Assembly: GCA_000708835.1 (NCBI GenBank)
Contig: DF237251.1
Span: forward strand, 43,683-107,682
Direction of reading: 5' to 3'
DNA from: Klebsormidium nitens
Taxonomy: Eukaryota; Plantae; Klebsormidiophyceae
Length of the DNA stretch: 64,000 nucleotides
A program made the translations under genes and the position numbers. A model generated the notes under the pieces. That model was not told where the DNA came from. It saw only the letters and a list, made by a program, of their open reading frames with translations, and ran no database searches. This document shows, piece by piece, positions 13,993-64,000 of this stretch (its first letter is position 1; the number at the start of each line of letters is the position of its first letter).

Positions 13993-14349
13993 ATGAAAAA
14001 ATTGATCTGTTCAACTTTTCCGTCAACTTCAAGTCGTGCAGGTGCAGTTCTCGAATTTGGTACAGCAGCCACAGTCTTTCTTCCCTTGTCTGACCAGCTG
14101 CGGGGTCGAATCAGAAGATCCGACGGCAGCTCGGATTTGGCGGTGCTCGAATTTGTGGACCCGGATGGTAATGTTCTTCTCAATTCGAAGGAGGTGAAGC
14201 TGTATGGGATCGACGGGGGAGAAGTGACAATTTGCGACGGCCAGCATCTGATCAGCTGGGCTCTGGACTACAAGATCGAGGTGGAAGGTGGGCAATCGTA
14301 TTGCACCGTTCCTCCTAGGACATCGTTTGTGAAAGAGGTTCACTTGTGA
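13993..14349 (+). CDS. Probable terminal exon of an unidentified gene (beta-rich peptide)
   Basis: 118-aa ORF with protein-like composition (AVLEFVDPDGNVLLNSKEVKLYGIDGGEVTICDG). Possible upstream exons near 12570-12690 and 13550-13660. No family recognised. Confidence 0.3.
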   Translation: MKKLICSTFPSTSSRAGAVLEFGTAATVFLPLSDQLRGRIRRSDGSSDLAVLEFVDPDGNVLLNSKEVKLYGIDGGEVTICDGQHLISWALDYKIEVEGGQSYCTVPPRTSFVKEVHL

Positions 14350-41000: not shown

Positions 41001-42089
41001 CCAGGAACCTCAAAGGACAGCGGTTCCGTTCCGTTCAAAGTCACACCGGAACCCAGCTTCCGGGGCAGCGGCGAGTACGCCACTGCCGTACGGAACTGGA
41101 CTCCTGCATCGTTACAGTCGACAGCCAGGTTGCCGCCATCGCGAGCCTGCAAAAGCGGGGGGCCAGGGCTGGAGACGAACGGAAAGGGACAACGGAAGCG
41201 CTTGCCGGTGTCACCTAGAGTCAGTGTGTCTCGAGTTTGGATGCGGTTAGCTTGTTGATTTGTACTCAGACCAGAGACCACACCGTGCATTCAAGGCAAT
41301 CTTGCCCCGAGCGCAGCACTTTGGTCATGAGGGGATCCTTCGAAGCTTGAAAGGATAGCTTGTGTTAAAGAAGAAGAACGAGAGACAACTCATGGTCAAT
41401 GGCTGAAATGACAAAGCTGGGCAGATTGTTCGTCAGAATCTGAGATTGGGTTAGCCAGAGATTCGAATAGGGCTAGATTACTAAACGAGCCGAGAATGCA
41501 AGTAGAACCTGTATTGTTTTGGCGAAGTCGATTCCCAGGATCCTAGGAGCGTGGCTTAAGCAGGTTGGCCCGTCGCTGAAAAGCTATGGAAGATACCCTT
41601 CGCTCGGTTCTCACCACGAAGCGTCCAGCCAACGGGGGAATGGCCACCAACGCCTCTGACAGCTTGATGCGGCATGTGGACGCAAATGTTTCGAAGTTTG
41701 TCTCTGCAAAAAGAAACCAAGCAGGCCAACCTTTGTGTTGAATAGTGTGAACAAACACATCAGGCACCAAGTGGTGGGAAAGAGAAGCGTTGGTGACTCG
41801 TTCTGCAGCCAGCAACATTGGCGAGCTTTGTCCCGATGAGGCTCCACACCTTCTTGACGTCTGCTTGTGAAAGACGCAGGGTAAAAATGCAAGATGCATG
41901 GTTTCCACATAACCGATAGTTGACTTTCCGGCATGGGGCCTGTTTCCACTTACCTTTTGGTAGCGGTGGCAAAAAGACGAGGAAGGGGGGGTGGTATGTG
42001 CGGCAGCGCCACATACAGTCCACAACGGACAGCCCCACCGCATGGCGCTTCGTGGGGGTGGCGGGCTGGACCAACACGGTGTTCAACAC
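38069..42089 (-). CDS. BAHD-family acyltransferase-like protein with non-canonical motifs, multi-exon
   Basis: N-terminal VQPATPT..GLSVVD; VPLLLMQV|THF..CVSFGFHPMFTDGWG; STDDALSALLWRSITAAR; GYVGN; ASLDLGFGQP (DFGWG variant). The 5' start is not resolved. Confidence 0.8.
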
Positions 42090-42499
42090 ACGACATAGTG
42101 GCGCCGCACGAGTACGTGCAGGGGACAGGGCCCCTTAATAGCAGGACTACGGAAATATCCGACATATATGTTCGACTGGCCCGGGTTCGCGGCCGCGGCG
42201 CCCCCCCTCGATCGGGCCCAGTTGGCGCGACCTTACATTTCCACCCAACTCCGCCCCGGGCGTTGCACTTCAGGCATAGCCTATGCGCCATAAGGCCATG
42301 GCAGCCGTTACCGTTCTCCTTTTAGCCGTTCCCGCTCACTCCGAGTTGGGCTGCAGGACCAGGTATTTTGAGCTACCTATACTAGTTGCCAGCGGTCTCA
42401 TCCTAGCTGCCCAAATCTAGATTTGCGTCGCCTCGCTCAGGAGTCAGGGACACTTCTGCCAGAAGTTTTGGACGTCACCGTTGCTTTCTTCAAGGCGTT

Positions 42500-43600
42500 T
42501 CTGTTTTCGAAATGCTGATTGCAATGCTGCCTTGTCTCCTGACTTGTCTCCTGTAACTTGCTTCTCGAGAGTTCCAGGGCTGACTTGAAAATTCAGGTCA
42601 ACCAGGTCGCTAGTCAGAGGTGGCGCTGGCGAGGTCTGGCACGTTGCGGCAGGTCTTGGACCTGCCTGATTCTTCCCGACGTTTCTCGAAGAAGGCAGAA
42701 GATTCTTGCTGAGTCAGCAGCCTGATGACTCAGCACAGCTGGCGCCGGCACCCAATGGCGCTCTCTGGCACCCTCTGGCAGCATTCTGAGCTCGATTTTA
42801 TGGGTTGTCAGGGTCTTTCTCTTCATTTCTTGACAGAACAAAGGGTCCAAATCTGGAGGGAGCTCTGGACCAAGCTCGGAAGCTGGCAACCTGCGTTCAG
42901 CGCTTGGTGCATGCAGGCGCGTGGACATGCTCAGGTAAGAGCGACTTCCTTCTCATTCTTTCTGACAATGCCGAGGGCCTGTGCTATGTGCTCCAGAATG
43001 GATGCTTTCCAAGTCTCAAAGAGGGGGCGCTGGGCTGATGTCCAAAGTCGGGGCTAGCCCCTGCTTGTTCTTTTGAAGGGGGCTGCCCCCTCGCAGCACC
43101 AGGGCTGCCCTTAAAGATCGGGGTCAGCCCCTGCTTTCTTCCGTGGAGGAAACTGCCCCTTCACAGCGCCAAGGCTGCCCTCCAGAGCCAGGGGCAGCCC
43201 CTGCTTTTCAATGATTGGGGGCTGCCCCCTCGCAGTGGTTGCCTGGTTAGCAACTTAGAAACGTGTTTGTAGGCAACTCAATTCAATGATATATTCCACA
43301 TGCATTCATGGGCATATGCATCTTGTGCAGGCTGATTGCTCTGCGACAACAGAGTGTGTGGACTGCCGCGTCGCGCCCCAGACTTTATGGTGAAGCTCTT
43401 GTTCCCGGGCTTGTCTGGTTCTGCAGCTGCCCAGCCCTGCATGCTTTCAGGCCTATGCTTCCAAAGTGGGACTCCTTCAGCCGTTGCCTACATCAAATGC
43501 TCACATGAGCTCAATCGCTCATTAGTGCGCCCCCAAACTCCGAGGAATCTCTTGATTGTTGTTCCCTCATGTTTTTGCAGCAGATGGCAGAGACGCCCGT
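42500..43600 (+). pseudogene. Diverged relic copy of the upstream region of the large primase-helicase gene (paralogous to ~50180-51300)
   Basis: QHSWRRHPMALSGTLWQHSELDFMGCQGLSLHFLTEQRVQIWRELWTKLGSWQ (42725-) aligns with QYSWRWHAMALFGILQQNSELALMGSNGPHTHFSERERVNFWKELCDELRRWQ (50403-). Both end at an equivalent CAG|GT donor, and DNA similarity extends upstream. Confidence 0.6.
43050..43236. repeat. ~70-bp tandem repeat x2.6 with short GC palindromes
   Basis: Units start at 43050, 43120 and 43191, with motifs GGGGCTAGCCCCTGCTT and GGGGGCTGCCCCCTCGCAG. Confidence 0.75.
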
Positions 43601-44041
43601 CACACCTCAACAACATGAACCAGCGGCGTCGTACTCTGATTAGATGAGCACGCTTGACTCAAGCGCTGCTTGCGTTCTCATTGTCCACTTCCACCTCCTA
43701 CGGTCTAGATCCACTTTTGTGTCGTGTCGCCGACTGCGCGTACTCGAGGATTCCGTCGAGGCGCTCTAGTGGAGCGTTGTAATCTGCAGATCTATCATTT
43801 GGCAATGCGTTTGGACCCATCGTCTCGGTCTTCATTTTAAATCAGGGAGCACTCCGTTTGTATCTGGATTCACGTCATCTAAAGAAGCCTTCGCTTTGGG
43901 TTTGTTCCAGGATTATCGATCTCTCTTGCAACGTTCGATTAGATTTAAGCTCCTTTACCGCTGATCAAGATTCACCCAAGCCTTTACGTACTGAGCAAGC
44001 AGAAAGTCTTGCTTGCGTGGCTGATGCCGCTTTCGTGTCAC

Positions 44042-44113
44042 AGGTTCACATTCGGCTTCTTTTCTAGGTTTCCATTCGGCTTCTTTTCTAGATTCACATT
44101 CGGCTTCGTTTCT
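44042..44113. repeat. 24-bp tandem repeat x3
   Basis: aggttcacattcggcttcttttct / aggtttccattcggcttcttttct / agattcacattcggcttcgtttct. Confidence 0.9.
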
Positions 44114-46237
44114 AAGTTCTGCTCCTACGTTGGCACCATTCTCTGCTTTCTCCCCCACGACCCACAGCCGGTAAGCCATTTTCCAGCTTCTCGTTTCGTC
44201 AGTTACCTCCTTCTCGTTCCTTTGGGGCCCGTTGATTGTCAGTGATGTGTTCTCGCTGACTTTTGGGATTAGGCCCCGACAACTTTGCAGATTACCTAGC
44301 AGCGTACGGAGATGGTAAGCAAAGTGTCCCATGCGCGAGCCTCTAGTAAAGTTTCACGAGCCATGGGACTCTCCATGCTTGGTTTTAGGAGCCTGTCGAT
44401 TCAGTCGGAATGGCTGTCGGTAAGCACCTGGCATCCCCCCAGTCCGCCGTCGAAGAACCTCTTTGAAGTTCATGCAATCGAGTGCACAAAGAGCAGGCTT
44501 TCATCCATTGCGTTTGACCTATAAGGCGCCTTGCCCCACTGGAAGCAGTGTCAAGGAGCAGCAGGTAGAAGAATCCCTGGCGACTTTGACACAACTGCGT
44601 GCACAAATCGCAGCAGGCAGGCATCAGTGGCCCTTTCACTCTGAGCAGTGTTGCGTACTTTTGCAGGGCCGGGACCATTTCGGAGGCTTTGGACCAATCA
44701 CCAGATGGTTCGTTGACTTTTTTCACGTGCTCTGTTGGGAGCCGAGCGACATCCTAATCTCTCAGGTATATAGTGCGGAGAAAACCCATCAAGCTTTGCA
44801 ACTTATTGCAGAGGGTACGGATCCGGAAGAGGCATCTTACAACGATTGTTCATAGATAGCTGAGGCCGCACGTGGAATGAGTGCGCAAGGATCAAATTGT
44901 CTCTCAATTCAATGAGGTGATCTTTCCCATCAACCTTCTGACGAGGGTCAAAAGGCTGCGTAAAAACAGTATCCGGACGGAGTCGGTCTGGTCGAGCCTA
45001 TCCTGCAATTGGTTCGTTACCTAGAAAGTCAGCATAGCTGTAAGGATGTATTTGACCCTTAGTGCCACCTACTCTCTTTCAAGTTCTCCATGGCACAATA
45101 CATTGATGCGAACAACAGTGTTCTTGATCGAACGGATTATTCGGCTTGCCTGGATTACTCGGCTTTCCTGGTACACTGAATCGGCTTGCCTCGATCAATT
45201 TAGGGTGCAGCGCAGATTGCATCACTTATCAAAGGGTAACAGGTTGCAGTACGTTGTTCATTAATGGTGCGGCCGGATTGGTAAGCATGGGAAGTTCGTT
45301 TTTCGATATGTACAAATGGTCGAAAGAGCATATTTATGCACGATTCCGAAGATGCCAAGATTGTTAGACTGATTATATGATCGATCGAGCTAGCGGCAAA
45401 TGTGCAAGCTTGCACGTTAGCTATAGCTAGGCTGGCCCGGACAGCTAGGCTCGAACTACTGCCAGCGCTGCATACATGCCATGATGAGGATCTAGCGCTA
45501 CAGTAGCTACATAATTCTGAACAACGTCCGCACTGCGATCATTGTAAGACAAACAGGTGGCATGCCATGCTAATATCGAACCATGCATAGTATGCAGCGA
45601 CTCGGATCGTTCTCAATATCAGCTCTAGCTAGATGCATGCATACGCACTACATATAGCATGTGCAAGAAATTTGCAAAAACGACCTCCCCTGGCGTAAGT
45701 TTGGTGCATTGCATGCTATATTTGTTCTTACATGCATATCACTATAACTGCACCTATATACATCCCGTACTCAATAGGAGGTTGATAACCTTAACGAGCA
45801 TGTTATGAGAATTAAGGATGGTGGCATGCACTTGACTAAGGCTCGATCCAGGCCCAGTAACTATACCAGATAAGATGAGTCATGCAACCCAATGATGGGC
45901 CAGAAACGTGTTGCACCACTAGTAAGCACTTGAGAGACGGTTTTGAGATTTGACGCAGCCATGGAAGTTCAAGGACTCCGAATTCATTCGTTTGGACGCA
46001 GCGTCGTATAGATGGCCGAATCTGTCTACAAAAACGAGTCCTATCACCACATGTGAGGCGAGTCTGCAGGGCGCTATGGTTGATATCTCACAGGAACTTG
46101 TCGGAGCGAACGACATTAAGCTGCTGATGCTCAACGAGTTCCAAAGTAGAATGACCCGTGCGTTCACTGCCTCTTCAAAGAGGCTGGGCTGGACTTAGAA
46201 GCAGTACTTTTATCTAACTAGAAATGAGCCTTGAGCT

Positions 46238-49200
46238 TCAGCGCACAGTTTCCTCTGCCTCCGCAACCAGCTCTAGCAACAACTTCTTCTCTAGAAGCTG
46301 GTCCTCTTCTGGTGCGGTTTCTTGCACGGACTCGAAATCACACAGGATAACATGATCCTTGTCAACCAGCAGGTTGTTGAGGGAGAGGTCCCCATGAAGG
46401 AGACGCGCCGCATGGAATCGGTCAAGTGCGCTTGTAGCTGCGGCAACTATTGCAGGCGTTCTCGCCGTGTCCTCCAGAGGGGCACCTGCAATCGAAAATA
46501 TCTTTAAAAACGAAGACTCTAGTTCCAAAATCAACACATCGCTTCAAGAAAAGCGGAAAAGCGGCAGAAGCAAAAGCATGCAATGCATACAAGCAAAGCT
46601 TCCTGACGACGAGCAAGAGCAAGGAAAGGCAAGGAAAGACGCGGCCAGCATGCGTTGCTTTTGAAGACATCCCTCGACAGAACGGTCAAGAACGGTCAAT
46701 ATGGAGCTTGTATGCACGGTCAATATGGAGCTTGTATGCAGAAGACTACTGTAAAGAGCGGCTCACCTTCATATGAGAGCGCGAGGAAGGGTGTCCCCGA
46801 ATGGGGCAGCAGGCCGTACTTGATCAGGCGGGGGATCACTTGTCCCTGCAGCGCCGCGTACTCGCTGCTCGTGTACAGCGCAAACTCGCGCTCCAAGGCG
46901 TCAGCTGATGCTCTCCTCCGCAGTTCGTACTTTTTTATGACGACGGGCTCCCCGTTGATACTCCCCTGCAAAGCAAAGGGTGGCATATTTCCAAAAAACG
47001 CCCAAATCTCCGAGGATGTCTAGAAGCAGATAAGGTTCAATGTTGTGCTTAAAAGTCAGCTTATTTGTTGGTTAACGCACATCGTCTAAGCACACACAAA
47101 GCACCTTAAGTAACTCAGGCTTCGCCAGACAAGTCAAACCATAGCGCCTCCTTTGGCCCCGCCCTCTCCTTATGCTGCATAGACCAGAGAGGACAGGGGG
47201 CCGGATATAAACGCGCACTTTTTGTAAATCTACACTCTGTGCATTGGTCTGATAAACTTCTCAGTCAAGCTGCCAGATGTTTTTGTCTGCTGGCAGCTTC
47301 GAGCAGTTCTAACGGTGGCGCAGTTGAAGGGAGACTGCTCCATCATTCCTGCTGCTTGTGCTTCTTCAACTTTTCAGACAACCAACTCAATGCTTGCCTA
47401 ACCCTGCTTTATGGACTTTGATGGATCGATCCGTCACCTCCCTCATGTGGAAGTTTCCGTAGATTTTGGAGAACAACAGACTCGTATGCTGGTTGGAAGC
47501 AAAAGTGCCGTGAGGCCAGAGGGGGAGTGCAGGAGCCTCTTTGTCCGTCCAATCACCTCGAAGAGGCTGCACACATATGGAGGCACCCACAAATGAAGGC
47601 AAAAATGCAGACAGGGTACACATCTGATGTAGTAACATCTTGCCCCTTTTTTCCTAGAATCATAAGAAAAGTTTGGAGACTCACGAAGATGAGGTTGCCA
47701 TGGCGACCGCTTGCCACTAGGGTTCCTTTGTACCCTATGCTGCCAAAACTTGTGACCTGGAAATCTTCCAGACTCGTTGCCCTTCTTTTCCGCTTCCCTG
47801 AAGTTGGTCGGGGAGTTGGTGCCTTCACAGAGAACGGGAGAGGCCTCCTGCAATGGATAACAAGCAAGACATGTGTAAGAAGCTCTGCATGGTACTCTCA
47901 AGAGAAAGCCGGACTTGCAAAAGAGCGCAGGCCTACAGATCTGTGATGCAGATTGCCAAGCTCTATCTGCGCTTCCAAGCTGTCTGAAGACTGGTCTTGC
48001 TCACAAAACCTGATTACTATGCTGAATGCAAGAGGCTTCATCAGCTCTAAATACAACACAACCAAGTCCCAAACCTGCAGGTTCTCAGCTGCATGGCCCG
48101 TCATTGTGCAGGGTCTAAACAAATTTGAATCAGGTCGCAAACCAACTATTGCTTCATAGACTACAAACAGCTACAAATTGATGCTCACGTGACTCTGCCT
48201 CGAGTGGTACTTGTTGGCAACTGAGCGACGGTGTAGCCCGCGACTGACGTGACTGGCACATCATCACGTGGCAGCCGGTCCTTCAGCGCCCTCCCCTTCC
48301 AGCACAGATCCAGGAATGTACAGGTTGCTGCGATCAGGCTGGGGGATCCCTCGTCTTGCCAATAAATTCGTGAGCAAAACAGGGTCTTTTTGAGCACGTC
48401 AGGATGGCGCGCCAGGAAGACGATTGCTTCATAAGTGGAGAGCATTCCAAATGGGGCCTCATCTTCCACCATGTCACCAAAAAGCTGCTGCAGGGCCAGT
48501 TCCACCTGCTTTCGCTTCCTTGGGTCCCTCAACAAGAGCTCGATGGAGTCGCCCTTGACCAGTTTCAGCTGCCAGTTCCCTTTGACCTCCACAGGGCCGA
48601 GAACCAGGTCACTACTCTGCGGACGGGCTTGCCCAAGCAAAGATCTGATGGCGACTACTTGGTCTGTATCGGATGCTGACCGCCCTGAGCCTCCTGACAC
48701 AAGAACTGCTCCACACCCCACCGTCTCAACAATTGCGTTCGCTACATTAGCTACATAGGTCATGAGAGGGGCTTCCACCGTCCCCTCTTTTGCGGCAGGG
48801 CTGAGTGGCTTTGCCCCTTCCTGGACACCTTGCTGGAGTTTCTGGAAAAGCAGATACTGGTCATCCAAGGAATTTACAAAATCATCCACTTTCCCTTCAA
48901 ACTCATTCCAAGGGAGAACTTCCTCGAAGGTCCTCGCATGTTGAGGTTGTGTTTTTGAATGAGACCGACGCGGGGATGTTCGAGCTGCAAGCTGTGGTGG
49001 CACCTGTTTTGCTGCTTGACGAGCAGTCAGACGACCCACAGAAAGCACGGACCGGACGCGACGAGGCACATCGTCTAGAGGAGCACCCTCCAAACAGAGT
49101 TGAAAAACAACCGATGTCGCTGGATCTTTCAAACAGTCCAATGCTGCGCTTTTTTCCCCAGGGTGTAGACCGGTGGAAGACTGGATTAGGTGCTCTTCAC

Positions 49201-49284
49201 GGGACGCCATGCTTCCGTGCGCTTTCCACCATAAATCTTCCTGCAGAGCAGTCTGACTGTCCGAGCCATTGGCTGCGAACCTTC
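46238..49284 (-). CDS. Crinkler/CR-effector-like PD-(D/E)xK restriction-endonuclease-fold domain fused to an atypical protein kinase; at least 4 exons, 5' end in gap
   Basis: REase-like TDQVV..GPVEVKGNW..ALQQLFGDMVEDEAPFGMLSTYEAIVFL. Spliced kinase: LVASGRHGNLIF|GSINGEPVVIKKYE..LQGQVIPRL..LALSYEG|APL..LLHGDLSLNNLLV..VILCDFES. Intron phases 2, 0 and 1 are all compatible. Confidence 0.8.
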
Positions 49285-49669
49285 NNNNNNNNNNNNNNNN
49301 NNNNNNNNNNNNNNNNNNNNNNNNNNNNNNNNNNNNNNNNNNNNNNNNNNNNNNNNNNNNNNNNNNNNNNNNNNNNNNNNNNNNNNNNNNNNNNNNNNNN
49401 NNNNNNNNNNNNNNNNNNNNNNNNNNNNNNNNNNNNNNNNNNNNNNNNNNNNNNNNNNNNNNNNNNNNNNNNNNNNNNNNNNNNNNNNNNNNNNNNNNNN
49501 NNNNNNNNNNNNNNNNNNNNNNNNNNNNNNNNNNNNNNNNNNNNNNNNNNNNNNNNNNNNNNNNNNNNNNNNNNNNNNNNNNNNNCGGTACACGACATAT
49601 ATGCGAACCTTCGACCAAAACCTAGCGAGACCTACCGTACCCATCTAACAATGTAACAATTTCAACGTA

Positions 49670-49935
49670 CCGTATCAATTTTGAATTTCGTCGTTCACGG
49701 TGCCGAATGATTAATTACAAGTTGAATATTGCTTTCGGCAGTCCGACAGATACTTTTCGGACGGTTCGGCACAGTACCGGATCACGCGGTCAAAATGCTC
49801 ACAATGCTGCTGAAATGACGTTTTTGCTGTCTCAAACATATTCCAACTTTTCGGCACAGGGTCTCCATATTCTCCGAAATATTTCGGCAGGGCAAATAAT
49901 TATTTATTTTTTGCCGAAATTAAAAATTGATACGG
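49670..49935. mobile_element. Tc1/mariner(pogo)-type MITE, 266 bp, AT-rich
   Basis: TA|CCGTATCAATTTTGAATTTCG ... CGAAATTAAAAATTGATACGG|TA: 21-bp TIR with 1 mismatch and a TA duplication. Confidence 0.8.
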
Positions 49936-51618
49936 TATAAGAAAACCAGTTGGCGCGACATTGCAACCCAGCCCCGGGCGTCGCCTGCTGTATAAGCTAT
50001 TAGCCATGACTGCTCAAAGGGCCCAGCATTCACCATTACCGCGCTCTGGTGAACCGTTTCCATGTCACCACGGGCCAGCCTGCTGGCTTCCTGTCCAAAA
50101 TCAAAGCACTCCCTCCTCAGGCTCAGCAGAGCAGAGCAGCGAGGTGATGCTTCAGGTTGCTCGTGTGGGCACATCACGGCGTCTGCCAGCTTTAAAATGC
50201 TGGCTGCATTGGTACCATGCCTTCTTGAAATTGCTTCTAGAAGTTTCGAAAGGTGACTCAGAATCCAGGTCACCAAGGACAGGTGGCGCTGGCAAGGTGT
50301 GGCGCTTTGCGGCGTGCTGCGGCAGATCTTTAACCAGCTTGCATTGCAGCCAAGTGTCCTGCCATGTGGCCCTGAAGATGCTTCTCTGAGTCAGCAGCTT
50401 AGGTGCCTCAGTACAGCTGGCGGTGGCACGCAATGGCGCTCTTCGGCATCCTGCAGCAAAATTCGGAGCTTGCTCTGATGGGGTCCAACGGTCCCCACAC
50501 TCATTTTTCAGAAAGAGAAAGGGTAAACTTCTGGAAGGAGCTCTGTGACGAGCTCAGGAGATGGCAGTCTGTGGTTGGTGCGCCGTGTACGCACGCATCT
50601 GGACAGCGTCAGGTGAGAGTCTTGCTTTGGTAGCTCTCTGACGCAACCTTCAAGCACAACCTGTACATATCTGTGTGACAGCAATGAAGTTGGGTTTGGC
50701 ATGTCTGCTGTGAGTGGATGTTCTCGATCTGGAAGAAGGGGCTCGTTGTCAAAGCATGAACTCATCAGTGCGACTGGGTCAGCCTGACTTTTGTGGTCAT
50801 CACCAACATGCAGTGAGTTTGGTAAGCAATGGGCATACGCATACTGGCAAGAACCATGCATAAGAGGGCTGACTTCCATAGGTTTCCAGATGCAAGTTCT
50901 GCAGTCAGCATGGGTGACAAGTCGATGAGGGTGAGAATTGCAGTGATCTGAGCCTTGATATGCTGCTGTTGGGTTGAAAGCTGAACCTACCTATGTTATG
51001 CATGCAGGCTGAATGCCCACTAACAGCAAAGAGCGTAGTCAGTAGCGCTGCGCACCAGCCCTTGAGGTAAGCCCTTTGCTTAGGCTTCTATGCTCGTGTG
51101 GCATGCGGACCTGCGCACTTGTACATTGACAGGATTCTGCGCCAAAGTGGGACTCATTTATCTGATGTCTACACTTGAGATTCAGTTGCTTGTCATGCAT
51201 TCTGAGACTCCGAGGGGTCTGCTGAGCAATCATTGTCCCTGTTCTGCAACAGATGGAAGAAAAACCGCTGCAACGCAAGTCGGCAGCCGCGGTGTGTAAG
51301 AGCAAGGCAGGCGACCATGCTGCTGATCTGGGCTCTTTCTCTGTGGTGAGCCCTTGATTGTTGGGAATATGATGCACTGATAGACTCTGCCATGAGCACA
51401 TGGTTAGGTCCGAGGATTTGAGGGCTTAGGATGCTATTTGTTGCAGATTGTCAGGTTGCTTCGCGTTGTGGTCGTTGATGGACAGGGATTCAGATGGTGT
51501 GCAGTAGCTCATAGGTGCGTTTCTGCAGAACCTGAGGTGCAAACTGTATAATTGTCAGAAGGGCCCACGCCCCTCACGCTTCCTCAGATGCATGCTGACA
51601 CGTCAATTCCTCCCGCAG

Positions 51619-54600: not shown

Positions 54601-57600
54601 TGACTGGATCTGCTGCGCATCTGATCAGATGCACGGATCAGATCAGGCGACGATGCACAATCAGTGAAGTGCTGCAACGTGTCTCTCCCCGTCCTGGTTG
54701 TAGGATCACATTGGGGATGGAATTGTGGTGATGCGCTCATCATACTCTGACCGAATGTCACTTATCGTCTTTTCAGGTGGAAGACAATGGAGTGGATGCA
54801 GAGGACCGGCGATCTACTTCGATGAGAGGGATCGCGGGCATTGCAGTCGAGAACGTGGTTTGCGGCACCACAACAGAGGTGAGAAGTGACCGGAGCGCGG
54901 TCAAGCTATATAAGTTGCACGCATCTCCACATTTGGGCAGCGCCACACAGATCCCCTCTCGGATTTTCGTTCCCTTCTCGTTCTAGAAAGCGGTCTATTA
55001 GAGTTCTGCTTTTTGGGCAAGAATTGCATTAAGCAATGCTACCGTGCTCAGATTTGGAGCTGCTGTGATGCTTCTCAGGCAGTGACTGGAGAGAAGATTG
55101 TTGAACTCGTCTACTGTTTCTCGCATGTCTCTTTTAATAGCGTGACCTTTTCGAATGGGGTTGGCTCCAGATGGTCGGATGCCACCGCTACAAGGAAAAA
55201 ATCCGAGATTTTCTGGACCGCATCAGCAGTTTGTCCGACGGCCTGTCTTGCTTCCACAGAATGCACTCGGCCCTGATTTGCATAAGGACGTCTCTTGGTC
55301 ATTCGCTGACGAAATCCCCATCTCTTGTCCAGGAAAGCGGCGGCAACCAGCTGTCGGCGACAAGTGCGGCCAGCGCATCCGGTTCCATGCGGTCAAGATC
55401 CGAAGAAGAGGGCGAGGACATTGAGGGGGCGGAGTTTGAGAGCATGGGCGAATCTTCGGACGAGGAGACATCCCAAGATCGAGACATGATCGACGACAAA
55501 AGCCAGGACGAGGAGAACCTGGTTATTGCCCGAGGCAGAATGCGCGCGGCCCAGGAGTCCGACTCCGAGGTGGACGTTTCTCAGCTTCTGGGTCGGCGCT
55601 TCAAGCTGCGAGCGCCGGGACAGGCGACGAAAATGATCCAAGCCGCTTCCCCGCCCTCACGATCGGAGTCCTCTGCCGAGTCCGGCTCTTCCGCGAGCCA
55701 CGGGCGATGCGCGGGGGCCCTGGCTGATCGGCAGCTGGCGCCGACCGCAATGGAAACGGATTCCGAGTCGGACGAGCTTCCCGTGCGCCGTAAGCGCCTA
55801 GTTTCCGATGGGGCAACCCGCTCTCCACAAACCAGGCGGCGCCGCTGGGTGCTGCTCTCATCATCGGAGTCCTCGGGTGAGAACGGCAACGTCTGGGCAA
55901 GGCAGAGCGATGCTGCTGGGTTGGACGAGGAAGTGCAGCAGAGGGGGGGCAATGAGCCCGTGCCTGGTGACAGTGCCAGCTCCGATGATCCGCCAGAGCT
56001 TGAAGACGATGGCTCTCTGGACGAAGTGGACTTTGGGGAGGAGTTTACGAATCTGTGCGTGATCGTGCCGCGTCTGCGGCAAGCGACCATTAGTCAGGTG
56101 AGCGCCATTTTAATCTGGATATTCTGCTGGAGTTCGGGCCATCCGCGAGGTGTGGTCCGGTCAGTTAGGCCGCCGGTAAGTTGGACCAGCCTTCCCTCCC
56201 ATCAAGTAAGCAAATGGCGGGCACTCTAAGCACTGGACCACACCTTCTCNNNNNNNNNNNNNNNNNNNNNNNNNNNNNNNNNNNNNNNNNNNNNNNNNNN
56301 NNNNNNNNNNNNNNNNNNNNNNNNNNNNNNNNNNNNNNNNNNNNNNNNNNNNNNNNNNNNNNNNNNNNNNNNNNNNNNNNNNNNNNNNNNNNNNNNNNNN
56401 NNNNNNNNNNNNNNNNNNNNNNNNNNNNNNNNNNNNNNNNNNNNNNNNNNNNNNNNNNNNNNNNNNNNNNNNNNNNNNNNNNNNNNNNNNNNNNNNNNNN
56501 NNNNNNNNNNNNNNNNNNNNNNNNNNNNNNNNNNNNNNNNNNNNNNNNNNNNNNNNNNNNNNNNNNNNNNNNNNNNNNNNNNNNNNNNNNNNNNNNNNNN
56601 NNNNNNNNNNNNNNNNNNNNNNNNNNNNNNNNNNNNNNNNNNNNNNNNNNCCCGTTAAGTAAGCAAATGGCGGGCACTCTCAGCAGTGGACGACACCCTT
56701 TGGACCACACCCTGTCAATGATTCTTTAGGAAGCCTCCTGTTTTGCAAGGAAGAGTCGTATGCAAGGTGTGGGCCAGTGAACTTGGTGTCGTAGCCCATG
56801 ATGCGATGCCCTTTGAGAGTTGGGCGTTCCCCTAAGTAACTGCGATGCCGCTCTGAACCAAGCGAGCGCTTGGTGCTCGGATGCAGGAGCTCGCAGGGCG
56901 CGATGGGTTTATTGTGGGCGGAAAGAGCTCCCAGACGCCCGTCGGTACCAGGATGCGGACCGGAGGCCCGTCCACTGTGGTGAGCAGCTGCGCAACTCGA
57001 GTTCGCTGCCATATGTGCAACACTGCCTCTGAAAGAGCATTTCAGTGCCGGGTGCTTGTGTGCAACTGGTGGGGAGCGAGAAGCATCGGCCCTGCTTTCA
57101 GTAGAGCATTGGAATTGAAAGCCTCTCCTCGTGTTCAATAGAAAGTGCCAAGCATCTAGAGCCCGATTGGCTGAGGCGCACACGCGTTTCCCTTCCTTGA
57201 AGGTTGCTCAGCGAGACCAACTCTGTGCTTGTAAAGAGTCGCTCTGTCCTTTTTTCGAAAACACCACCTTGACGTGGTTCACTGGCAAGCAGTCTTGTGA
57301 TCATCTGGGTTCTGAAGGCTCTCAGGCTGGTAATCGTGTCCCTTGTCTGCATGTGCGCAGGCAGGAGGCGATGGTCGGGACGCGGCCCAGCATGTGAGAG
57401 ACACCCGCGTTGCAGAGCTCGCCGAGCCTCAGGCCGTGGACGCGGCTCCAATCGTGCAAGTAAGCGTTCAAATATCGTGTTCCATCATTATTCAGAGAGG
57501 ACCGGAATTGAAAGATCATGGAAGCCATTCGAAAGGTTTTCCGACCAGATGTTGCGCCACTTGTGCGGAGTTGACCAGTCCGTTTGCCTCTGGTCGTTCA

Positions 57601-60600
57601 AACAAGCAAGTACGCCGTATGAAAACACGGCAAGTCCGGTTCCGGGATCACAAGGTCAACAAGTAAGCATCTCCATAGTACTCTCTGAGATCAATCGGCT
57701 CGTCCTGTTCTTCCTCTTCGTCGAAGTAACGCACATCGAGGCCTTCGGGATCTGTATCCAAGATAGATCGGATGTATTGCTCGACCGAGGTTCTGTCAAA
57801 GTCTTCAAAGCCGCCAGCCTCGGTAAAGTCCTTCAACAAAGCCGGCCAATCCAGCTCGCTCGTGTCACCACATGTGCCCGACCAACAAAGGTCGTCGATT
57901 GCTTGCGTAGCTGCCACCAAGAACAGCCTCGCCCTTTCGCAAGTCTCCTGGTCAGTGCTGTCAAGCTTGAACAGATCTTGTACCAGCTCCGTCGTGATGG
58001 GCATTCCATTTGCGATGGTCATTCCAAGTGAGAACTTGTCTTTGTTGGACAGACCATTTTCCTAAGTGCAAGTTTAAGGAACCAACACAGCCGCATCTCA
58101 ACCTCGGCGGCCGGTGAAGAGGGCTCCCCGACCCCGTCAATACCTATCAGAGACTCGGTCTGCTTTGCATCATCTAAAGACACTTTGCTTTCAACTGTGC
58201 AGGTGGCTTCCTTCCGTCGGCTGTCGGAAGGGGAAGTTGCTGTCCACAGCGAGCACGACGGCAGGCTGCTGACGACGAGAACGAGGGTGCTGGGCACCTT
58301 CTTCTTCGCAAAGCGCAAGTTCACGAGGGAGCCCGTCGACTACCGAGATTCGAAGGACGGGCCCCAAGGCTTCTGCAGGCGGTACGGAGAGGTCCTCGGC
58401 CACCGGGTGGAAGTCCGGCGCCTGTGCCCCTCCCGCGAGTTCGGTTCCTATCCCGACTGGCCCACGGCATACCCTAACCTGCGCGGGCAGCGCCACCTGG
58501 AGGAGGCGATCAAGGCGGGGTGCCCATGCAAGCCCTACCTTGACCTAGAGCGGGACGGGGGTTTGGCGGAAGGGGAGACGCTCGAGACGGTCATCCAGGC
58601 CTTTGAAGCGGCCATCAAGGACATCTTCCGGGAGGACTACAACATCGAGCTGCCCCCCAATTCCTTCAACTGGCTCCCCTGTGACTACGGGCCCGGCGGC
58701 AAGTTCAGCTTGCACCTGGTGGTCTCGACCCACTCCCCCCAGTTCGTCTTCCACTCCAACCTGGCTGCACCCGCCGACCATCAGGGCGCGGGGCACCTCG
58801 CCAAGGAGCTCGCCCGACGCCTGCCCCCGCGGTACGCCGAGCTCATCGACCAGTCGGTGTACACCAGGAACCGGGGGATCCGGCTCCCGTACTGTTCAAA
58901 GCTCGCAACCCCTCGCAGCCGCCTCATCCCCTTGGACGAGAGCAAGCCAAACGCCGATGCGTGCATCACTTGGCTGGACGAACACGTCCAGATCAATCAA
59001 GTGCCGACCAGCCTGCCGGACGCTGTAGCCGAGCCCCGACGCCCCCGTACCAGGCCCGAGCACTTTCGGTACCAGAACGCCACGACAGCGAGCGCGTACA
59101 CGGCCCAGAGGTGTACGGAGCTGGTCCAGACCCTGCATCCGACAGCGTACCGCAGGGGCTCCTTGTCAGCGAGCTCTCTGAACTTTAGCTGGCACGACCG
59201 GAATGAGCCGTGCTATTCGGGCAACGTTCACGAGGGCTCGCGGGACATCCTCGTCATCGCCGATCCCAAGCGTAACGCTGTCTTCGCCAAGTGTGATAGC
59301 GCGCGCCTGGATGCGGGGACGGGTTTGTGCTGCAAGGAGCTGCCGGCGCGGTACCTGGGCCCGTTCTACGCGGACGTCAAGACTTGGAAGGATGGGGCGG
59401 TGGAGGTGAACATGCGGTACCTGGAGCGGAAGCCGCTGGCTGCGGCGCCCATGGACCTGCAGCTGATTCGCGGCGGGTTCCGGGACCTGACGGACATGGT
59501 CGTGTTCAATGACGTTCTGAACAAGTGAGTGTCAGCGCTTTGTTTGTAGACAAGATCAGCCACATCAAGGACCGCCAGTCTTGCATAACTTTTGCCAGTG
59601 CGTATGCGAACTCTGCGCGTGGTCTGTGAGCGAAACCTTGAAGTGTAGATTGGACAAATCCAACAGAAACAGGCCCCATTCTTTGGATTTTGAGGCCGTT
59701 CAAGATGTGGTCCGGACAGCTAGTGTTTGGACATCCAAGTGTGGACCACACCTTGCCAATATCTCATAGGAACCCTGCTCTTTTCATTCTTAGGCCGAGC
59801 CAGATGTGGGGTGAGGGTCAGCCAGCCCTAAGTCAGTCTAGCCGTTCGAAAGCCCATGGCGAGCAGGGTTTGGTCTTGGACCACACCCTGTCGATGTTAT
59901 TTAGGAACTTGCCTTTTGCTAGAGGAAGTCTTTCACAAGGTGTGGTTCAGCCAGTCGTAAGGCAGGCCAGCCATCTGGCCTTTCAGAAGCATGTTGCGAG
60001 CAGTTCTGATTGACTGGACCGCACTTTGTCAATGATTCTTAGGAACCGTTAGAAAGAGTCTTACCCAAGGTGTGGTCCAGCCCGTGCGTAGATCAGACCG
60101 GCCATTTAGGCCGTTGAAAAACATGGGGCAATCAGTCCTGGTTAACTGGACCACACCCTAACAATGTTTGTAAAGGATCCCCCTCTTTTCTGAGCCGAGC
60201 TTTGTGCAAGGTGTGGTCCAGTCTCGTGTGATGCTTCTGGATTGGCTTCTTTCTTGGTGGTAGTGTGAGCCGCTTTTCAAGGCAGATCGACACTGAGGAA
60301 GGATGTTGCAGGTCAAGGCTTTTGCAAATGGGACAACACAGTCGCCTTGGCTGTGCAATTGGACCCACATGTTTACTTTCAGCTGGCTCATGCCAAAGCG
60401 ACTCCTTTTTGCAGGTGGCAGGCTGGCCGCTACAAGGCGGCGCTGATCCGAAGCCCCATGGACACCGCAAAGTCGACGACCACCCGGGCCATCATCCAAG
60501 AGCCCCCCCGACCAGAGACGGCCCTCGCGATCACCTATCGGCAAACACAAGCCAGCGATGCAGCCGGGAAGAACCCTGATTTCGCGCACTACGGCGAACT

Positions 60601-62533
60601 GAAAACGAAACGCGGGCGCGAGGTCGGGGAGCGCTTCATCGAGCCTCTCGCCGACAGGGAGCTCTACCCGCGCGTCATCTGCCAGGTCGACAGCCTTCCC
60701 AGGCTCCTCGGCGACCAGGCATGCGCTCCGGCCTTTGACCTGGTCATCCTCGACGAGAGCGAGTCAATCCTCGCGCACCTCTCGGCCGACACCCTCTCGT
60801 ATAGGCAGGTCATCATCCGGCTGATCGTCGAATTGCTTCGACGCGTGCGTCGAGTCATCTGCCTGGACGGGCATCTGGGGCAGCGAACCTTTGACTTCAT
60901 GACGCTGCACGGGATCCGCTGTTCCCCTATGATCATCAACAAGCACGTGCCAGAGCGGCCTCTCCAGTTTGAGTTCCTTGAGGGGCGAGCAGGGCTCCAA
61001 ATATGGGAAAGCGGAATCTTTGAGGCGCTCGAGGCCGGCCAAAACGTCTTTGCAGTCAGCATGTCGTCGGACAGGGCGCGGGACCTGGGCAGCGTGGTTG
61101 CAGAGCGGGGGCTTGTGGACGAGGGGCAGATTCTCGTCATCACGCGGCACTCTCACAGGGAGGTGAAGCGGGGCCTTGGAAACGTGAACGAGAGCTGGGC
61201 AAAGCGGCTCGTCATTATCAGTCCCACGGTGGAGGCAGGGGTGGACTTCAACCAGCCATGGTTCCACCGGATGTTCCTGTACATTTGCAGGAAAAGCACG
61301 CACCCGCGGGGGCTCGACCAGATGAAGGGGCGGGTCCGGCAGCTGGTCGACCCAATGGTCCTGTGCTTTGTCGGGAAGGGCATCAACTTGCCGACGACGG
61401 GGCCAGAGGGAAGCGCGTACAGGACGGTAATGGGGAAGAATGCTGGAAGGGTCCCGAGGCTGGGGGTCGAGGAAACGTACCAGTGGTTCCTTAACCGGGA
61501 TGAGAAGGTCGGAGCGGGGGTTTTCTGCGAGGGCGCAACCACCCGCCTGCTCGCGCACAACGAGAAGGAGCTATTCAATGGCCGGACGCACTTTTACGAG
61601 GAGTTCACGGAGCTGTTGGAGAGCGATGGCCACGTCGTGAGGGGGGTGCGAGTCCTGGACCCGGCCGTTGGGGGTGAGCCGGGCAGGGGGGAACAAAGTC
61701 GGGGCAAGTTTACGCTCGAGCAAATGATCGCCGCCTCTGACATCACGCCTGGTCAGTTCGCCGCCATCGAGGGTCGGGTCCGCAGGAACGAAGACTACCC
61801 GGGGGAGAGGGTGCAACTGAAGAAGTACCAGCTGGCACACTTCTACCGCGTGCGGCAGTTGGACGCCAACTTTCTGCGGACATTTGGCCCCTATCCGAAC
61901 CTTGCGGTCGAGTTCATCTTGCAGGTCGTTGTACCTCGGTACGAGTCCGACAGTGAGGAGATTGGGCGGCAAAGGTACGGCCCCCAAAAGGCCGAAATTG
62001 CAAAGGAGTTGCTGCAGGTGATGGGCTTTCCGCACCCCCTCGCCCACGAGCACGTCACCAGGCCCCTTGCAGAGTTGAGGGAGGAGCTGGCGGCCACCAG
62101 CTACTTCCGGGATTACTCTGAAACCGTGAAGCTGTTCCAGGCACGCGCCCTCCCAAACCAGGATGTCCTGGCAAAGCAAAAATCGGCCACGATCGCTCTG
62201 AACCACGTCTTTTCAGAGCTCGGGTTGCAGCTCGTGGCCATGCAAAACAGCCGATTGCCGCGGAACGCGCAGGGGCGAAGGGGTGCTCGTATTTATGGGG
62301 GGTGGAAAATGCTGCGGAAGCCAAAGACACGGACACGGCCAGTCGATGGGCCGGTAGGGGTAGATCTCATGGCCCAGCTCTTGAAGTTGCGACTCAAAGA
62401 TTCACCTGCTCTAAAGTCGCGAATCGTTCCCGCAGCATTGAGAGAGTACGTTGATGGGGTTCACTTCAGGTGGCCGGCGATGGTGAACCAGGATGACGAG
62501 TGTCAAATCGTAGTTAGGATGCCTAGATCGTAG
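51619..62533 (+). CDS. Large spliced gene (~1,850 aa, 5' end probably further upstream to ~50403): Cys/His finger - 2A-like motif - acidic region - AEP primase/Zn finger - UL9-like SF2 helicase
   Basis: Exons 51619-52098, 52328-52471, 53546-53682, 53881-53982, 54224-54403, 54777-54878, 55333-56097, 56887-56979, 57361-57459, 58203-59524, 60415-62533. All have YAG acceptors and GTRAG-like donors; phases 1,1,0,0,0,0,0,0,0,2 keep one open frame (5543 nt). Joining of the upstream exons is a prediction. Confidence 0.6.
53102..53456 (+). repeat. Palindromic-box repeat array, cluster 1 (intron 52472-53545)
   Basis: Full units GGACCACACCTTG-46/47 nt-CAAGGTGTGGTCC at 53146-53217, 53285-53357 and 53385-53456, plus a lone box at 53102-53114. 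Confidence 0.95.
56148..56775 (-). repeat. Palindromic-box repeat array, cluster 2 (intron 56098-56886), partly hidden by an assembly gap
   Basis: Boxes at ~56148-56158 and ~56235-56246, and a full reverse-oriented unit at 56702-56775. AAGTAAGCAAATGGCGGGCACTCT occurs on both sides of the N-gap. Confidence 0.85.
57648..58022 (-). CDS. Intronless 124-aa acidic ORF nested antisense in intron 57460-58202
   Basis: ATG at 58022 to TGA at 57648; helical, protein-like composition (ELDWPALLKDFTEAGGFEDFDRTSVEQYIRSILD). No family recognised. Confidence 0.5.
   Translation of the reverse strand: MTIANGMPITTELVQDLFKLDSTDQETCERARLFLVAATQAIDDLCWSGTCGDTSELDWPALLKDFTEAGGFEDFDRTSVEQYIRSILDTDPEGLDVRYFDEEEEQDEPIDLREYYGDAYLLTL
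58203..59524 (+). CDS. Exon encoding an archaeo-eukaryotic primase (PrimPol / herpes UL52 / NCLDV-type) plus C-terminal Zn-finger-like region
   Basis: Motif I KPYLDLERD, motif II KFSLHLVV, motif III IDQSVYTRNRGIRLPYCSK; Zn-ligand pattern EPC..VH..AKC..LCC. Confidence 0.9.
59701..60219 (-). repeat. Palindromic-box repeat array, cluster 3 (intron 59525-60414 between primase and helicase exons)
   Basis: Units at 59878-59948, 60016-60078 and 60148-60219, a degenerate unit from 59743, and a box at 59701-59713; period ~132-138 bp. Confidence 0.95.
60415..62533 (+). CDS. Exon encoding an SF2 helicase of the herpes UL9 / NCLDV replication-origin-binding family
   Basis: Walker A-like RSPMDTAKST, Walker B DLVILDESES, motif III VICLDGHL, motif V IISPTVEAGVDF, motif VI DQMKGRVRQL; long C-terminal region. 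Confidence 0.88.
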
Positions 62534-62728
62534 TTGGATAGACCACCTGAGATGCTCTAAGATAGAGGATCGAGTGCACTTTGAAATCACATGCGAATTG
62601 AATCATTGACGATGCGGGCTTCTCAATGTGCCCTATTGTGATGGTCAATGTGTCGCCCCTTCTTGGATGTGCTCATGTGAACGCTCTTCGAAGTGCGTGT
62701 ACGTGGGAAGCAAGTGACCTCTCCGGTT

Positions 62729-63050
62729 TGACCACACCTTGTCATTTCATTACCGAATTTATACCACTCACAGTGTTATTCTTCATGATGAAGCCCAATG
62801 CAAGTTTCGATCTACTCACTTGTCAGTCAGACCGGCCATTCATGCCATTTGGAAGCATGTGGCGAGCAGTTTCGGTCCTGTGTTGGACCACACCTTGTGA
62901 ATAGTTATTAAGAGTTCCACTCTTTGCTAGGAAGAGCCATATACAAGGTGTGGTCCGGCCGTCCATACGTCAAGCCGGCCATCTAGTTGTGGACCGTACG
63001 TTGTCAGTACTTCCATGCAAGTCTCCAGAGCCATTTGCAACTTGTGGTCA
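62729..63050 (-). repeat. Palindromic-box repeat array, cluster 4 (3' of the helicase stop)
   Basis: Full unit at 62885-62956, with degenerate units starting at ~62729 and ~62991. Confidence 0.9.
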
Positions 63051-63488
63051 CAATCGGAATACCGAGTAGAAGCAACAAACGGAAGTTGTGTGCAATGATA
63101 CTTTGTGAAATTTCTTTGCAAACGATACTCCAACCGTTTGAATGGATGCATTCTTTGGCTATAGACCGCAATCGCGCTTCGCGATTATAGAGATGGACAA
63201 AGCCGTGCTCGAAAGCGCTCGATCTGCAATTGTTAGATGTTATCGTGAATTTGGATTACTTGAGACCATTTTGGATGCCTCCGCTCTTGGCGGCATGCGC
63301 GCGCTCACTGTAACGTTTCTGCCCTCAAGACACATTGGACGCCATGAGATGATAAGCTCCTTTTTTAAAGGGGTGCTTGGTTAATGACACCTTTGGATGG
63401 GAGTCTGGGTGATAATCCAGGAACGCCCATAAGTTATGCATAGTCAATATAGCCTATGCCATGATGCCAATAAGCGATTCCATCATCA

Positions 63489-63950
63489 ATGGAATGTATG
63501 CATCCAATAATCCGATACGCTACACTCACCGAGCCGTTTGACCTCCGTCATATCATTAGAGCGCTCGTGCGATCATTGGTTGCCGAGGGTTTTTATGCGT
63601 TTTGGGACAGGACAGGCGTCGATGGGCCATATGCAAGAAAGGTGAGTTGGCGAACCGCATTGAATCGCGCAGTTCAAGCACGACGCCGTGCACGGCAGTT
63701 GCGAGTCAGAACGACCCCCCGTGCAAATAAGCATGATATGGCAGCGTCATCTTCCATGAAATGCGTAACAGCAAGAGCGGTGTCCCCATCACCCTCGTGT
63801 CGTGCCCCAAGCCTTGTTGTGTGGGACGACCACGAGCCAGTTTTGGGCCTTGAGATGCTTGCGAATCCGGAGAAGGCTCGAGTTGCTCACGAAGCCTCTG
63901 AAAACATGTCGCCCAGATTACGGGAATGTGCCAAAAGTTGCCATCTTTGA
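63489..63950 (+). CDS. Intronless 153-aa ORF of unknown function
   Basis: ATG-initiated ORF in the island's 3' flank; no recognisable motif. Confidence 0.3.
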   Translation: MECMHPIIRYATLTEPFDLRHIIRALVRSLVAEGFYAFWDRTGVDGPYARKVSWRTALNRAVQARRRARQLRVRTTPRANKHDMAASSSMKCVTARAVSPSPSCRAPSLVVWDDHEPVLGLEMLANPEKARVAHEASENMSPRLRECAKSCHL

Positions 63951-64000
63951 ATTCTGTACCTTGCCAGTCACAATATCCAGCGCCAGTATATTTTCAGCTG

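Follow-up and report, generated by a model that had tools for sequence, protein, structure and literature searches.

A virus-type primase-helicase gene with a predicted conserved intron and neighbouring box arrays, probably part of a multicopy integrated element of the alga Klebsormidium nitens

The window analysed here is a stretch of 64,000 nucleotides (nt) at the 3' end of Klebsormidium nitens scaffold DF237251.1 (GCA_000708835.1); position 64000 is the last base of the scaffold, and a record coordinate equals the window coordinate plus 43682. The annotated host neighbours are a TPR gene (up to 36.7 kb) and a PF02458 transferase (38069-42014, minus strand). These are followed by the gene KFL_003020180 and then by a gene model of 1864 amino acids (aa) that runs from about 50.56 kb through a helicase. 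The preliminary description of this DNA had proposed that host genes stop at about 42.2 kb and give way to a replicative element. The first point holds, as the final annotated host gene that Pfam recognises, the transferase, ends at about 42014. The candidate element beyond it is the subject of this study, above all its primase-helicase gene, the intron predicted in that gene and the arrays of a short sequence box that accompany it.

The first domain of this gene lies in an open reading frame (ORF) at 58185-59528. The exon proper (58203-59524, plus strand) begins at a conserved acceptor, has neither an ATG nor an internal stop, and encodes an archaeo-eukaryotic primase (AEP) of the PrimPol/UL52 type with a predicted UL52-like zinc finger. 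The exon found no match in Pfam, PHROGs or PADLOC, and the same is true of most small ORFs. An exhaustive HMMER search with the primase ORF recovered 213 relatives, mostly of about 1030-1170 aa, in which PF02399 follows the primase region. A structural model of the exon was generated using AlphaFold and a 64-sequence alignment (predicted local distance difference test, pLDDT, 86.8). When compared with solved structures by Foldseek, it matched human PrimPol best (E 9e-10, TM about 0.6 on the target), with further matches to UL52 of a herpesvirus (herpes simplex virus), D5/E5 of poxviruses and PrimPol of African swine fever virus (ASFV). In a library of viral structures, the best matches were giant-virus replication origin-binding protein/helicase/primase models, with E down to 1e-22. 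Across the 64 sequences, residues A3, H177, D222, Y226 and R233 are invariant and D120, K116 and S175 are conserved at 90% or more; the acidic motif I, the SxH motif II and the acidic motif III are all present in the window copy. Within the predicted zinc finger, C343 is invariant, and H349, C370 and C383 are conserved at 90% or more.

The second domain lies in an ORF at 60347-62533, whose exon (60415-62533, plus strand, stop codon included) has no internal stop. It encodes a superfamily 2 (SF2) helicase composed of a Herpes_ori_bp N-terminal part and a C-terminal DUF8368. The helicase scores 48.9 bits against PF02399 (cut-off 20; E 3.7e-13), the best stretch being profile positions 121-199 of 820, and it matches solved origin-binding proteins at E 3e-5. 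K42 of the Walker A motif, D136/E137 of the DExx box and Q325, R329 and R331 of motif VI are invariant among relatives. No match was obtained between the DNA-binding part of UL9 and the DUF8368 region. The P-loop (60440-60470) is an unusual Walker A motif in which the lysine is kept and the preceding residues are unlike those of all other family members. This variant is common to three paralogs (the window copy, P0001 and P0002) and hence is no defect of a single copy. Fold, motifs and PF02399 score all agree with the domains first assigned to this gene, an AEP primase and a UL9-like SF2 helicase. From these comparisons of sequences and models, the hallmark gene is shown to fuse a PrimPol/UL52-type AEP primase to a UL9/origin-binding-protein-like SF2 helicase in a predicted product of 1146 aa.

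The two domains are joined across a predicted spliceosomal intron of 890 nt (59525-60414, plus strand, GTGAGT...GCAG, phase 2), which sits at the domain junction. Its donor GTGAGT begins at 59525 and overlaps the stop codon of the primase ORF, the acceptor, a pyrimidine-rich GCAG, extends to 60414, and the two sites are in matching phase. Identical donor, acceptor and phase are found in five copies that span 57-88% protein identity: the window copy, the close copies L001 and L002, the distant K. nitens copy L003 and the metagenome copy L004. In the annotated models of three paralogs, the junction falls at this very position. Once joined, the exons give 1146 codons without an internal stop, and a BLASTP search with them returned a single alignment across the junction against five intronless proteins (1064-1175 aa, E down to 6e-135). 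In these intronless relatives the primase and helicase domains abut within a few codons. By every sequence criterion the intron is real, and the ORFs at 58203-59524 and 60415-62533 are two exons of one predicted gene.

Because the primase exon starts at an acceptor and has no ATG, at least one upstream exon is missing from the model, and a second acceptor near 58203 is likely. An ATG-bearing first exon between a minus-strand ORF at 57648-58022 and the primase acceptor was rejected, as the candidate donor is in the wrong phase. A birth of the intron by insertion of a hairpin unit was also set aside, since one lineage has the same intron without any box. The gene had been described as intron-rich and very large; one firm intron and one likely further acceptor are what the sequence supports, and a single, very large, intron-rich gene is unproven. 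Other paralogs are annotated quite differently (1033, 1054, 1301 and 1693 aa), and one element region carries six mutually inconsistent models (P0003, P0011, P0027, an 1864-aa model, a 1301-aa model and a 323+721-aa pair). On scaffold DF237660, the recombinase and Prim-Pol/superfamily 3 (SF3) ORFs are unannotated. In the K. nitens annotation these ORFs are strung together into models of 1000-1900 aa that disagree with one another, and the assemblies break at the copies; both need correcting.

The gene is accompanied by a 13-bp box, GGACCACACCTTG. With up to two mismatches allowed, the box occurs 24 times in the window against 1.84 expected, a count reached by 0 of 100 shuffles, and 22 of the 24 occurrences fall into four clusters. 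Array 1 (53102-53456) has seven boxes in alternating orientation; array 2 (56146-56775) has at least four and is broken by an assembly gap at 56250-56650; array 3 (59701-60219) has eight and lies within the intron; array 4 (62729-62956) has three and lies in the 3' flank of the helicase. A single box is not palindromic, and facing pairs about 46 nt apart form units of 65-76 nt. As single strands, these units can form terminal stems of 11-16 bp but hardly any other pairing (Z-scores -1.9 to -6.6), and two kinds of arm can be distinguished by the bases that follow the box. The four arrays noted earlier are thus confirmed, but the repeat described there as palindromic is an inverted pair of non-palindromic boxes. 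The arrays occupy non-coding DNA around the AEP-helicase gene. They had been described as confined to introns and the 3' flank; an intronic position is not obligatory, as copy L003 has none in its intron and a more distant lineage has a different motif.

The linkage of the box to AEP/UL9 genes was assessed by a census with a permissive pattern over all Klebsormidium-type DNA at hand, which amounts to about 200 kb and not the whole genome. Around and upstream of AEP-helicase genes, 87 boxes were counted in 55.4 kb, against 1 in about 151 kb of host flanks, right halves of elements and two other loci. The host flanks (about 66 kb) and the right halves had none, the single stray match lying elsewhere. 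Linkage to the gene is therefore supported. Exact scans for inverted box pairs found none in the metagenome contigs of the Joint Genome Institute (JGI) or in IMG/VR; samples with Klebsormidium-type contigs are evidently missing from the metagenome collection, so these scans are uninformative on linkage.

One alternative takes the arrays for a miniature transposon of hairpin type, or a satellite, which spread through the non-coding DNA of the element and has no role in replication or control. The array units do resemble tiny terminal-inverted-repeat elements. Array 2 broke the assembly. Array copy number and presence also vary between copies, and L003 has no box in its intron or 3' flank, so the arrays are dispensable there and could be a hitch-hiking hairpin repeat. 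Against this explanation, boxes are absent from the host flanks, admittedly a small sample, and from the right halves of the elements, and neither target-site duplications nor isolated single units were seen. Moreover, lineages with 57% protein identity retain the core ACACCTTG, and it is the outer bases that shift from lineage to lineage. In one lineage the two box arms consistently differ from each other, which fits recognition sites better than a selected hairpin. Finally, the deeply divergent copy L047 (25-39% protein identity) lacks these boxes and has another motif in their stead, repeated within the helicase region, 3' of the helicase and at the right extremity of the element, so that an unrelated motif is arrayed at equivalent positions in a distant lineage. 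A miniature transposon is accordingly judged the less probable account of the arrays, although it is a serious contender.

Clustered copies of one short site, specific to the replicon, beside a presumed initiator gene are what is understood by iteron-like arrays, and this is the arrangement found here. The arrays are element-specific cis sequences that probably serve as protein-binding sites, and a function as origin or control region is plausible.

Intronless relatives also carry repeats that abut the AEP-helicase gene. L049, the closest intronless relative of that gene, lies on a 25-kb contig of GCA_013573075.1, where a short C-rich repeat array at 13431-14012 runs up to the contig end and terminates there in a perfect 55-nt palindrome; the palindrome is reminiscent of the hairpin terminus of a linear genome. 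The L049 protein is present on 18 contigs of 2-50 kb, 16 of them of 10-50 kb. On L006, from a European Nucleotide Archive metagenome, 212-nt direct repeats of 92-94% identity (3647-3858, 7326-7537 and 7608-7819) flank the intronless AEP-helicase gene, and on a sister contig the neighbouring genes have AEP_C962R and PriCT_2 domains.

The locus is not isolated, as it had first appeared, but represents a truncated member of a family. The helicase has matches at 58-91% identity in six K. nitens proteins, several of which lie on scaffolds of 10-13 kb. Searches with the primase and contig look-ups added the loci DF237498, DF237223 and KFL_009660020, and K. nitens has at least 10 loci in several deep lineages. 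At least four contigs of one JGI sample hold further copies, two of which adjoin TIR and EDS1-type genes; this indicates that these contigs come from the nuclear genome of another streptophyte. In these two (L052 12680-17542 and L053 11667-18131, JGI 3300060284), the copies lie beside TIR-domain, TPR and EDS1-type, immune-receptor-like genes. The host-type neighbours are different at each locus. The case of a single-copy syntenic ortholog shared by streptophytes, which would have spoken against mobility, does not apply, since the gene is multicopy with variable flanks.

Comparison of the window with five copies gave a ratio of nonsynonymous to synonymous divergence (dN/dS) of 0.14-0.22 in both exons at dS 0.3-1.6, and therefore the copies diverged while the protein was under selection. 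The two verified exons of the window copy have no disruption. Among the paralogs, one helicase exon has an in-frame stop and one primase exon has a frame shift. A small downstream ORF (63142-63950, plus strand), uninterrupted at 173-184 aa in L001 and L003, is split over two frames in the window by one disruption or a putative intron.

These data also bear on a domesticated host gene family of viral ancestry that serves DNA repair or replication of the host. Introns, purifying selection and nuclear location are compatible with domestication, and eukaryotic PrimPol belongs to the same primase clade. However, the gene is found at 10 or more loci in deeply diverged lineages, many on 10-13-kb scaffolds, and all close homologs come from Klebsormidium or metagenome contigs. 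It is also linked in conserved order to a tyrosine recombinase and a second primase-helicase, with different neighbours at every locus. Domestication is thus very improbable.

This conserved order is seen in copies that continue beyond the point where the window ends. At the scaffold terminus (64000) the element is truncated by the assembly, and in paralogs the tyrosine recombinase gene starts about 190 bases further on. L001, L003 and L047 continue in a common order: the small ORF, a 351-aa ORF, an 800-906-aa ORF, a minus-strand ORF of 685-701 aa and more ORFs, the large ones among them unassigned. The 800-906-aa ORF combines Prim-Pol (PF09250) with DUF5906/D5-like SF3 helicase domains, a primase-helicase of D5/NrS-1-like type, and has at least eight K. 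nitens paralogs. In the 351-aa ORF, R189, K235, R303 and Y338 are invariant and, together with a His motif, follow the order of tyrosine recombinases. The K. nitens members have no direct match to PF00589 (Phage_integrase), one viral member of the family matches it at 2.2e-8, and the assignment as tyrosine recombinase is thus transitive; a profile of the family returned only noise against PDB sequences. On IMG/VR contigs, among them a Sputnik-type virophage genome, relatives of the 351-aa ORF are found in the neighbourhood of the helicase gene. For the 685-aa ORF, PDB yielded no match and IMG/VR no relative.

Among the window ORFs scanned, which did not include every ORF, there was no match to a capsid, integrase, DDE transposase, HUH or reverse transcriptase protein. 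The absence of an integrase noted earlier is correct for these ORFs, but it is an artefact of the scaffold end, given the recombinase that paralogs carry beyond it. No next window exists in which to look for capsid or integrase genes, as had been suggested; the paralogs supply the recombinase, and no capsid was found in the ORFs scanned. In the long ORFs scanned in the window, L001, L003, L004 and L045, neither major capsid protein, polymerase B, A32 ATPase nor VLTF3 was detected, and no sequence similarity to the capsid genes of virophage-type loci, nor a Pfam match to a virophage capsid, penton or packaging ATPase, was seen. Virophage- or polinton-like traits are present in the paralogs, namely an integrase plus primase-helicase module and multicopy insertions of 15-40 kb. 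L045, L052 and L053 apparently hold just the AEP-helicase side before host-type genes resume.

The right-hand genes raise a further explanation, a large cut-and-paste transposon of the Kyakuja-Dileera-Zisupton (KDZ) type that carries viral replication genes as cargo, with the arrays as subterminal repeats bound by its transposase. In L004 (13988-17449, JGI 3300060284), 3 kb downstream of the helicase, two adjacent minus-strand ORFs match KDZ (E 2.7e-4) and the cysteine cluster CxC4 that accompanies KDZ (E 1.2e-3) in the expected order, and 74 residues of the K. nitens 685-aa ORF are 38% identical to the KDZ segment of L004. The arrays at the right extremity of L047 would also suit such a transposon. 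The L004 scores are nevertheless under the curated cut-offs (21.2 against 26.6 bits for KDZ, 19.1 against 26.9 for CxC4), and no K. nitens ORF matches KDZ even at E 5. In addition, neither terminal inverted repeats nor target-site duplications have been delimited, the arrays are for the most part internal, and the KDZ genes may be those of an adjacent, independent transposon. A KDZ origin is therefore regarded as quite improbable.

Relatives of the helicase are found at 37 IMG/VR loci, some of them in giant-virus metagenome-assembled genomes and on contigs of 127-526 kb, with an AEP directly upstream in four. The virophage-type contig L014, which has a Sputnik capsid, carries relatives of both the helicase and the recombinase. 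On giant-virus-type and gene-dense virus-like contigs the primase-helicase is one intronless ORF, and on virophage-type contigs the helicase is fused to a different primase module. The virus-type module of the preliminary description is therefore upheld as non-host, virus-related and, by prediction from sequence, spliced, but its closest relatives are giant-virus and virophage-type primase-helicases rather than those of herpesviruses.

K. nitens is reported to have phycodnavirus-like polymerase, capsid, ATPase and VLTF3 genes (PMC5294986), and events of giant-virus endogenisation are likewise reported for it (PMC11244446); giant-virus-like genes of this alga also appear in PMC12344493. The first two reports, together with the many giant viruses in which AEP-helicase relatives are annotated and the large IMG/VR contigs that carry them, would be consistent with the window holding a decaying fragment of an endogenised giant virus (Nucleocytoviricota), its arrays being viral intergenic repeats without present function. 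Host-type genes, however, bound the copies within about 11-21 kb, and the long ORFs scanned in the window and in the K. nitens and metagenome loci contain no giant-virus core gene. The low dN/dS over at least five copies and the conserved introns point to continued function rather than decay, and the gene set (a recombinase and two primase-helicases) and size better fit small integrating elements. A decaying giant-virus fragment is thus an improbable source of the locus.

Taken together, the window from 50.3 to 64.0 kb, possibly from 42.2 kb, is interpreted as one copy, represented by its left and central portions and cut by the scaffold end, of a multicopy family of integrated, virus-derived mobile elements of Klebsormidium. 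This interpretation is held to be probable, with considerable doubt remaining. Such an element would be inserted by its own tyrosine recombinase and expressed from the nucleus. Its arrays would be bound by an element-encoded protein, most likely through the C-terminal domain of the helicase, and would then act as iteron-like origin or control sites beside the initiator gene. Intronic arrays would be kept in the DNA and be absent from the mRNA.

Several points weigh against this interpretation. Neither target-site duplication nor attachment site nor empty site was seen and both ends of the element are undefined, and no capsid or packaging gene was found in the ORFs scanned, so that the element may be a virus or may be transposon- or plasmid-like. 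The start codon and 5' exon of the hallmark gene were not found, its PF02399 match is confined to the N-terminal part of the helicase, and splicing of its intron in vivo is a prediction from sequence. The box census covers only the 200 kb stated above, L003 does without boxes at the two sites mentioned, and the pattern in L045, L052 and L053 means that many copies may be fragments.

A more specific proposal is a capsid-less, nuclear, spliceosome-adapted replicon of viral descent, which would have its own initiator, namely the AEP/origin-binding-type helicase, a second primase-helicase and a tyrosine recombinase. The box arrays, some of them within the intron of the initiator gene, would be origins or incompatibility determinants co-evolving with that initiator, and the whole would be a eukaryotic counterpart of an integrative plasmid. 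This proposal is doubtful and is offered as speculation.

Upstream of the hallmark gene, coding blocks conserved in other copies extend over 50265-56229 (plus strand) and end in an acidic Ser/Asp/Glu-rich ORF at 55171-56229; they have no Pfam match. The annotators' 1864-aa model, a prediction, starts at about 50561 and chains these plus-strand blocks with the primase-helicase. Between them lies a conserved acidic ORF of 124 aa (57648-58022, minus strand) that is transcribed away from the primase exon and has its own ATG at a conserved position. It shows an excess of changes at the third codon position, with mismatches of 44, 19 and 29 at the three phases of about 106, a substitution pattern that fits a coding minus frame. 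The ORF is present in three lineages and missing from two close copies, and its conservation argues against part of the 1864-aa model. A homolog occurs in L047 at a different place; circular permutation as the cause was rejected, since its orientation differs there too.

The kinase-like gene KFL_003020180 with a 5' ORF extension occupies 46241-49210 (minus strand). The annotated protein P0176 maps to 48763-46241, its first exon (192 aa) with 100% identity and the remaining exons with 85-99%, and the homolog P0175, 68% identical, maps to 49210-48194. The gene is lineage-restricted, and its 3' exons give weak matches to the catalytic loop of protein kinases. It had been called a restriction endonuclease-kinase gene; the kinase part stands weakly on these matches, and the nuclease part is unsupported, as no nuclease was returned by homolog search, Pfam, PADLOC or PDB. 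No paralog of KFL_003020180 was found next to other copies of the element. For this reason it is not counted as cargo, and it probably lies outside the element. The toxin-like cargo gene once suggested is not supported, as nothing toxin-like was found among the ORFs scanned, which did not include every small ORF.

The left boundary may be marked by a 33-nt motif at 42220-42252 (plus strand), which has an exact match, apart from one R position, in paralog L045. In the window and in L045 alike it lies a few hundred bases from the last host gene. The motif occurs once in the window and in just one other fetched locus, so that the two instances are weak evidence. Because it recurs at the host/element boundary of L045, a left edge near 42.2 kb is suspected, and these two instances hint that the DNA at 42.9-50.3 kb was gained later. 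A degenerate direct duplicate at 42602-42941 (plus strand) is 70-80% identical to 50265-50619, in agreement with the relic copy of a gene 5' region described before. Two tandem repeats, 43033-43206 (70-nt period, 3 copies) and 44042-44119 (24-nt period, 3.2 copies), sit in the gene-poor stretch separating the last host gene from the kinase-like gene. Directly after the first assembly gap, at 49668-49937, a pair of 23-nt inverted repeats, 96% complementary and 224 nt apart, resembles a small inverted-repeat transposon with no relation to the box arrays. A search of 42-64 kb against Rfam returned no RNA family, and no tRNA gene was found as a marker of the integration site.

Two assembly gaps interrupt the region, and no claim made here rests on continuity through either. 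The gap at 49285-49585 does not reach the conserved coding portion of the kinase-like gene, being upstream of it (homolog start 49210, annotated start 48763); a 477-aa ORF that seemingly spans it is an artefact of N translated as X. The second gap (56250-56650) interrupts array 2 and is flanked by two 47-nt repeats of 89% identity; the plus-strand ORF upstream of it stops at 56229, short of the gap. Here the assembly broke within a tandem array.

Although integrated virus-like elements are familiar from chlorophytes and protists, they have hardly been surveyed in streptophyte algae, which of all algae are the nearest to land plants. In the family described here, a replication gene of giant-virus/virophage type gained conserved, predicted spliceosomal introns and remained under selection while it was copied many times over within a nuclear genome. 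The family thereby offers a dated, multi-lineage series on the adaptation of viral genes to host expression, and its lineage-specific arrays beside a putative initiator are a natural co-variation data set for protein-DNA recognition. If the arrays prove to be origins, this would be a rare nuclear element of eukaryotes with iteron-like control.

Among known systems, the giant viruses Bodo saltans virus, Marseillevirus, Catovirus and Yasminevirus, as well as ASFV (F1055L), have genes of the same domain order and of similar size (about 1050-1170 aa). These viral genes are single and intronless, whereas the Klebsormidium gene, at about 21-33% identity, has the junction intron, needs an upstream exon and is set in a small multicopy nuclear element. 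UL9 of herpesviruses has similar N-terminal helicase motifs, as seen with PF02399 and the solved origin-binding proteins, and a herpesvirus origin contains short boxes in inverted orientation, as are found near the Klebsormidium gene. The match to UL9, however, covers only about 80-160 residues of the helicase core, and the C-terminal part in Klebsormidium is DUF8368. The boxes of Klebsormidium also form long arrays at four sites, and herpesviruses encode the primase separately.

Virophages and polinton-like viruses are alike in size (about 15-30 kb), in their many copies and in the combination of a tyrosine recombinase with a primase-helicase module. Unlike them, the Klebsormidium loci have two primase-helicases, predicted spliceosomal introns and lineage-specific box arrays, and their ORFs, so far as scanned, gave no sign of a double-jelly-roll capsid, a penton, a packaging ATPase or a protease. 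The elements of PMC5294986 and PMC11244446 share with this family the K. nitens genome and viral-type replication genes in the nucleus; as far as the available parts of these papers extend, they concern phycodnavirus-like core genes, and no AEP-helicase/recombinase/Prim-Pol element, intron or arrays appear there. Iteron plasmids and viral replicons are similar in having arrays of sites beside a presumed initiator gene, with a site that varies between related replicons. In Klebsormidium, by contrast, the arrays lie at several places, one of them intronic, and consist of inverted pairs with spacers of about 36-46 nt instead of tight direct repeats. The literature searched, the coverage of which was incomplete, contained no account of the element family, of its conserved intron or of its arrays. 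The type of gene is thus known from giant viruses and virophages, and the kind of element from the integrated virus-derived elements of algae, while the family, its intron and its arrays are apparently new.

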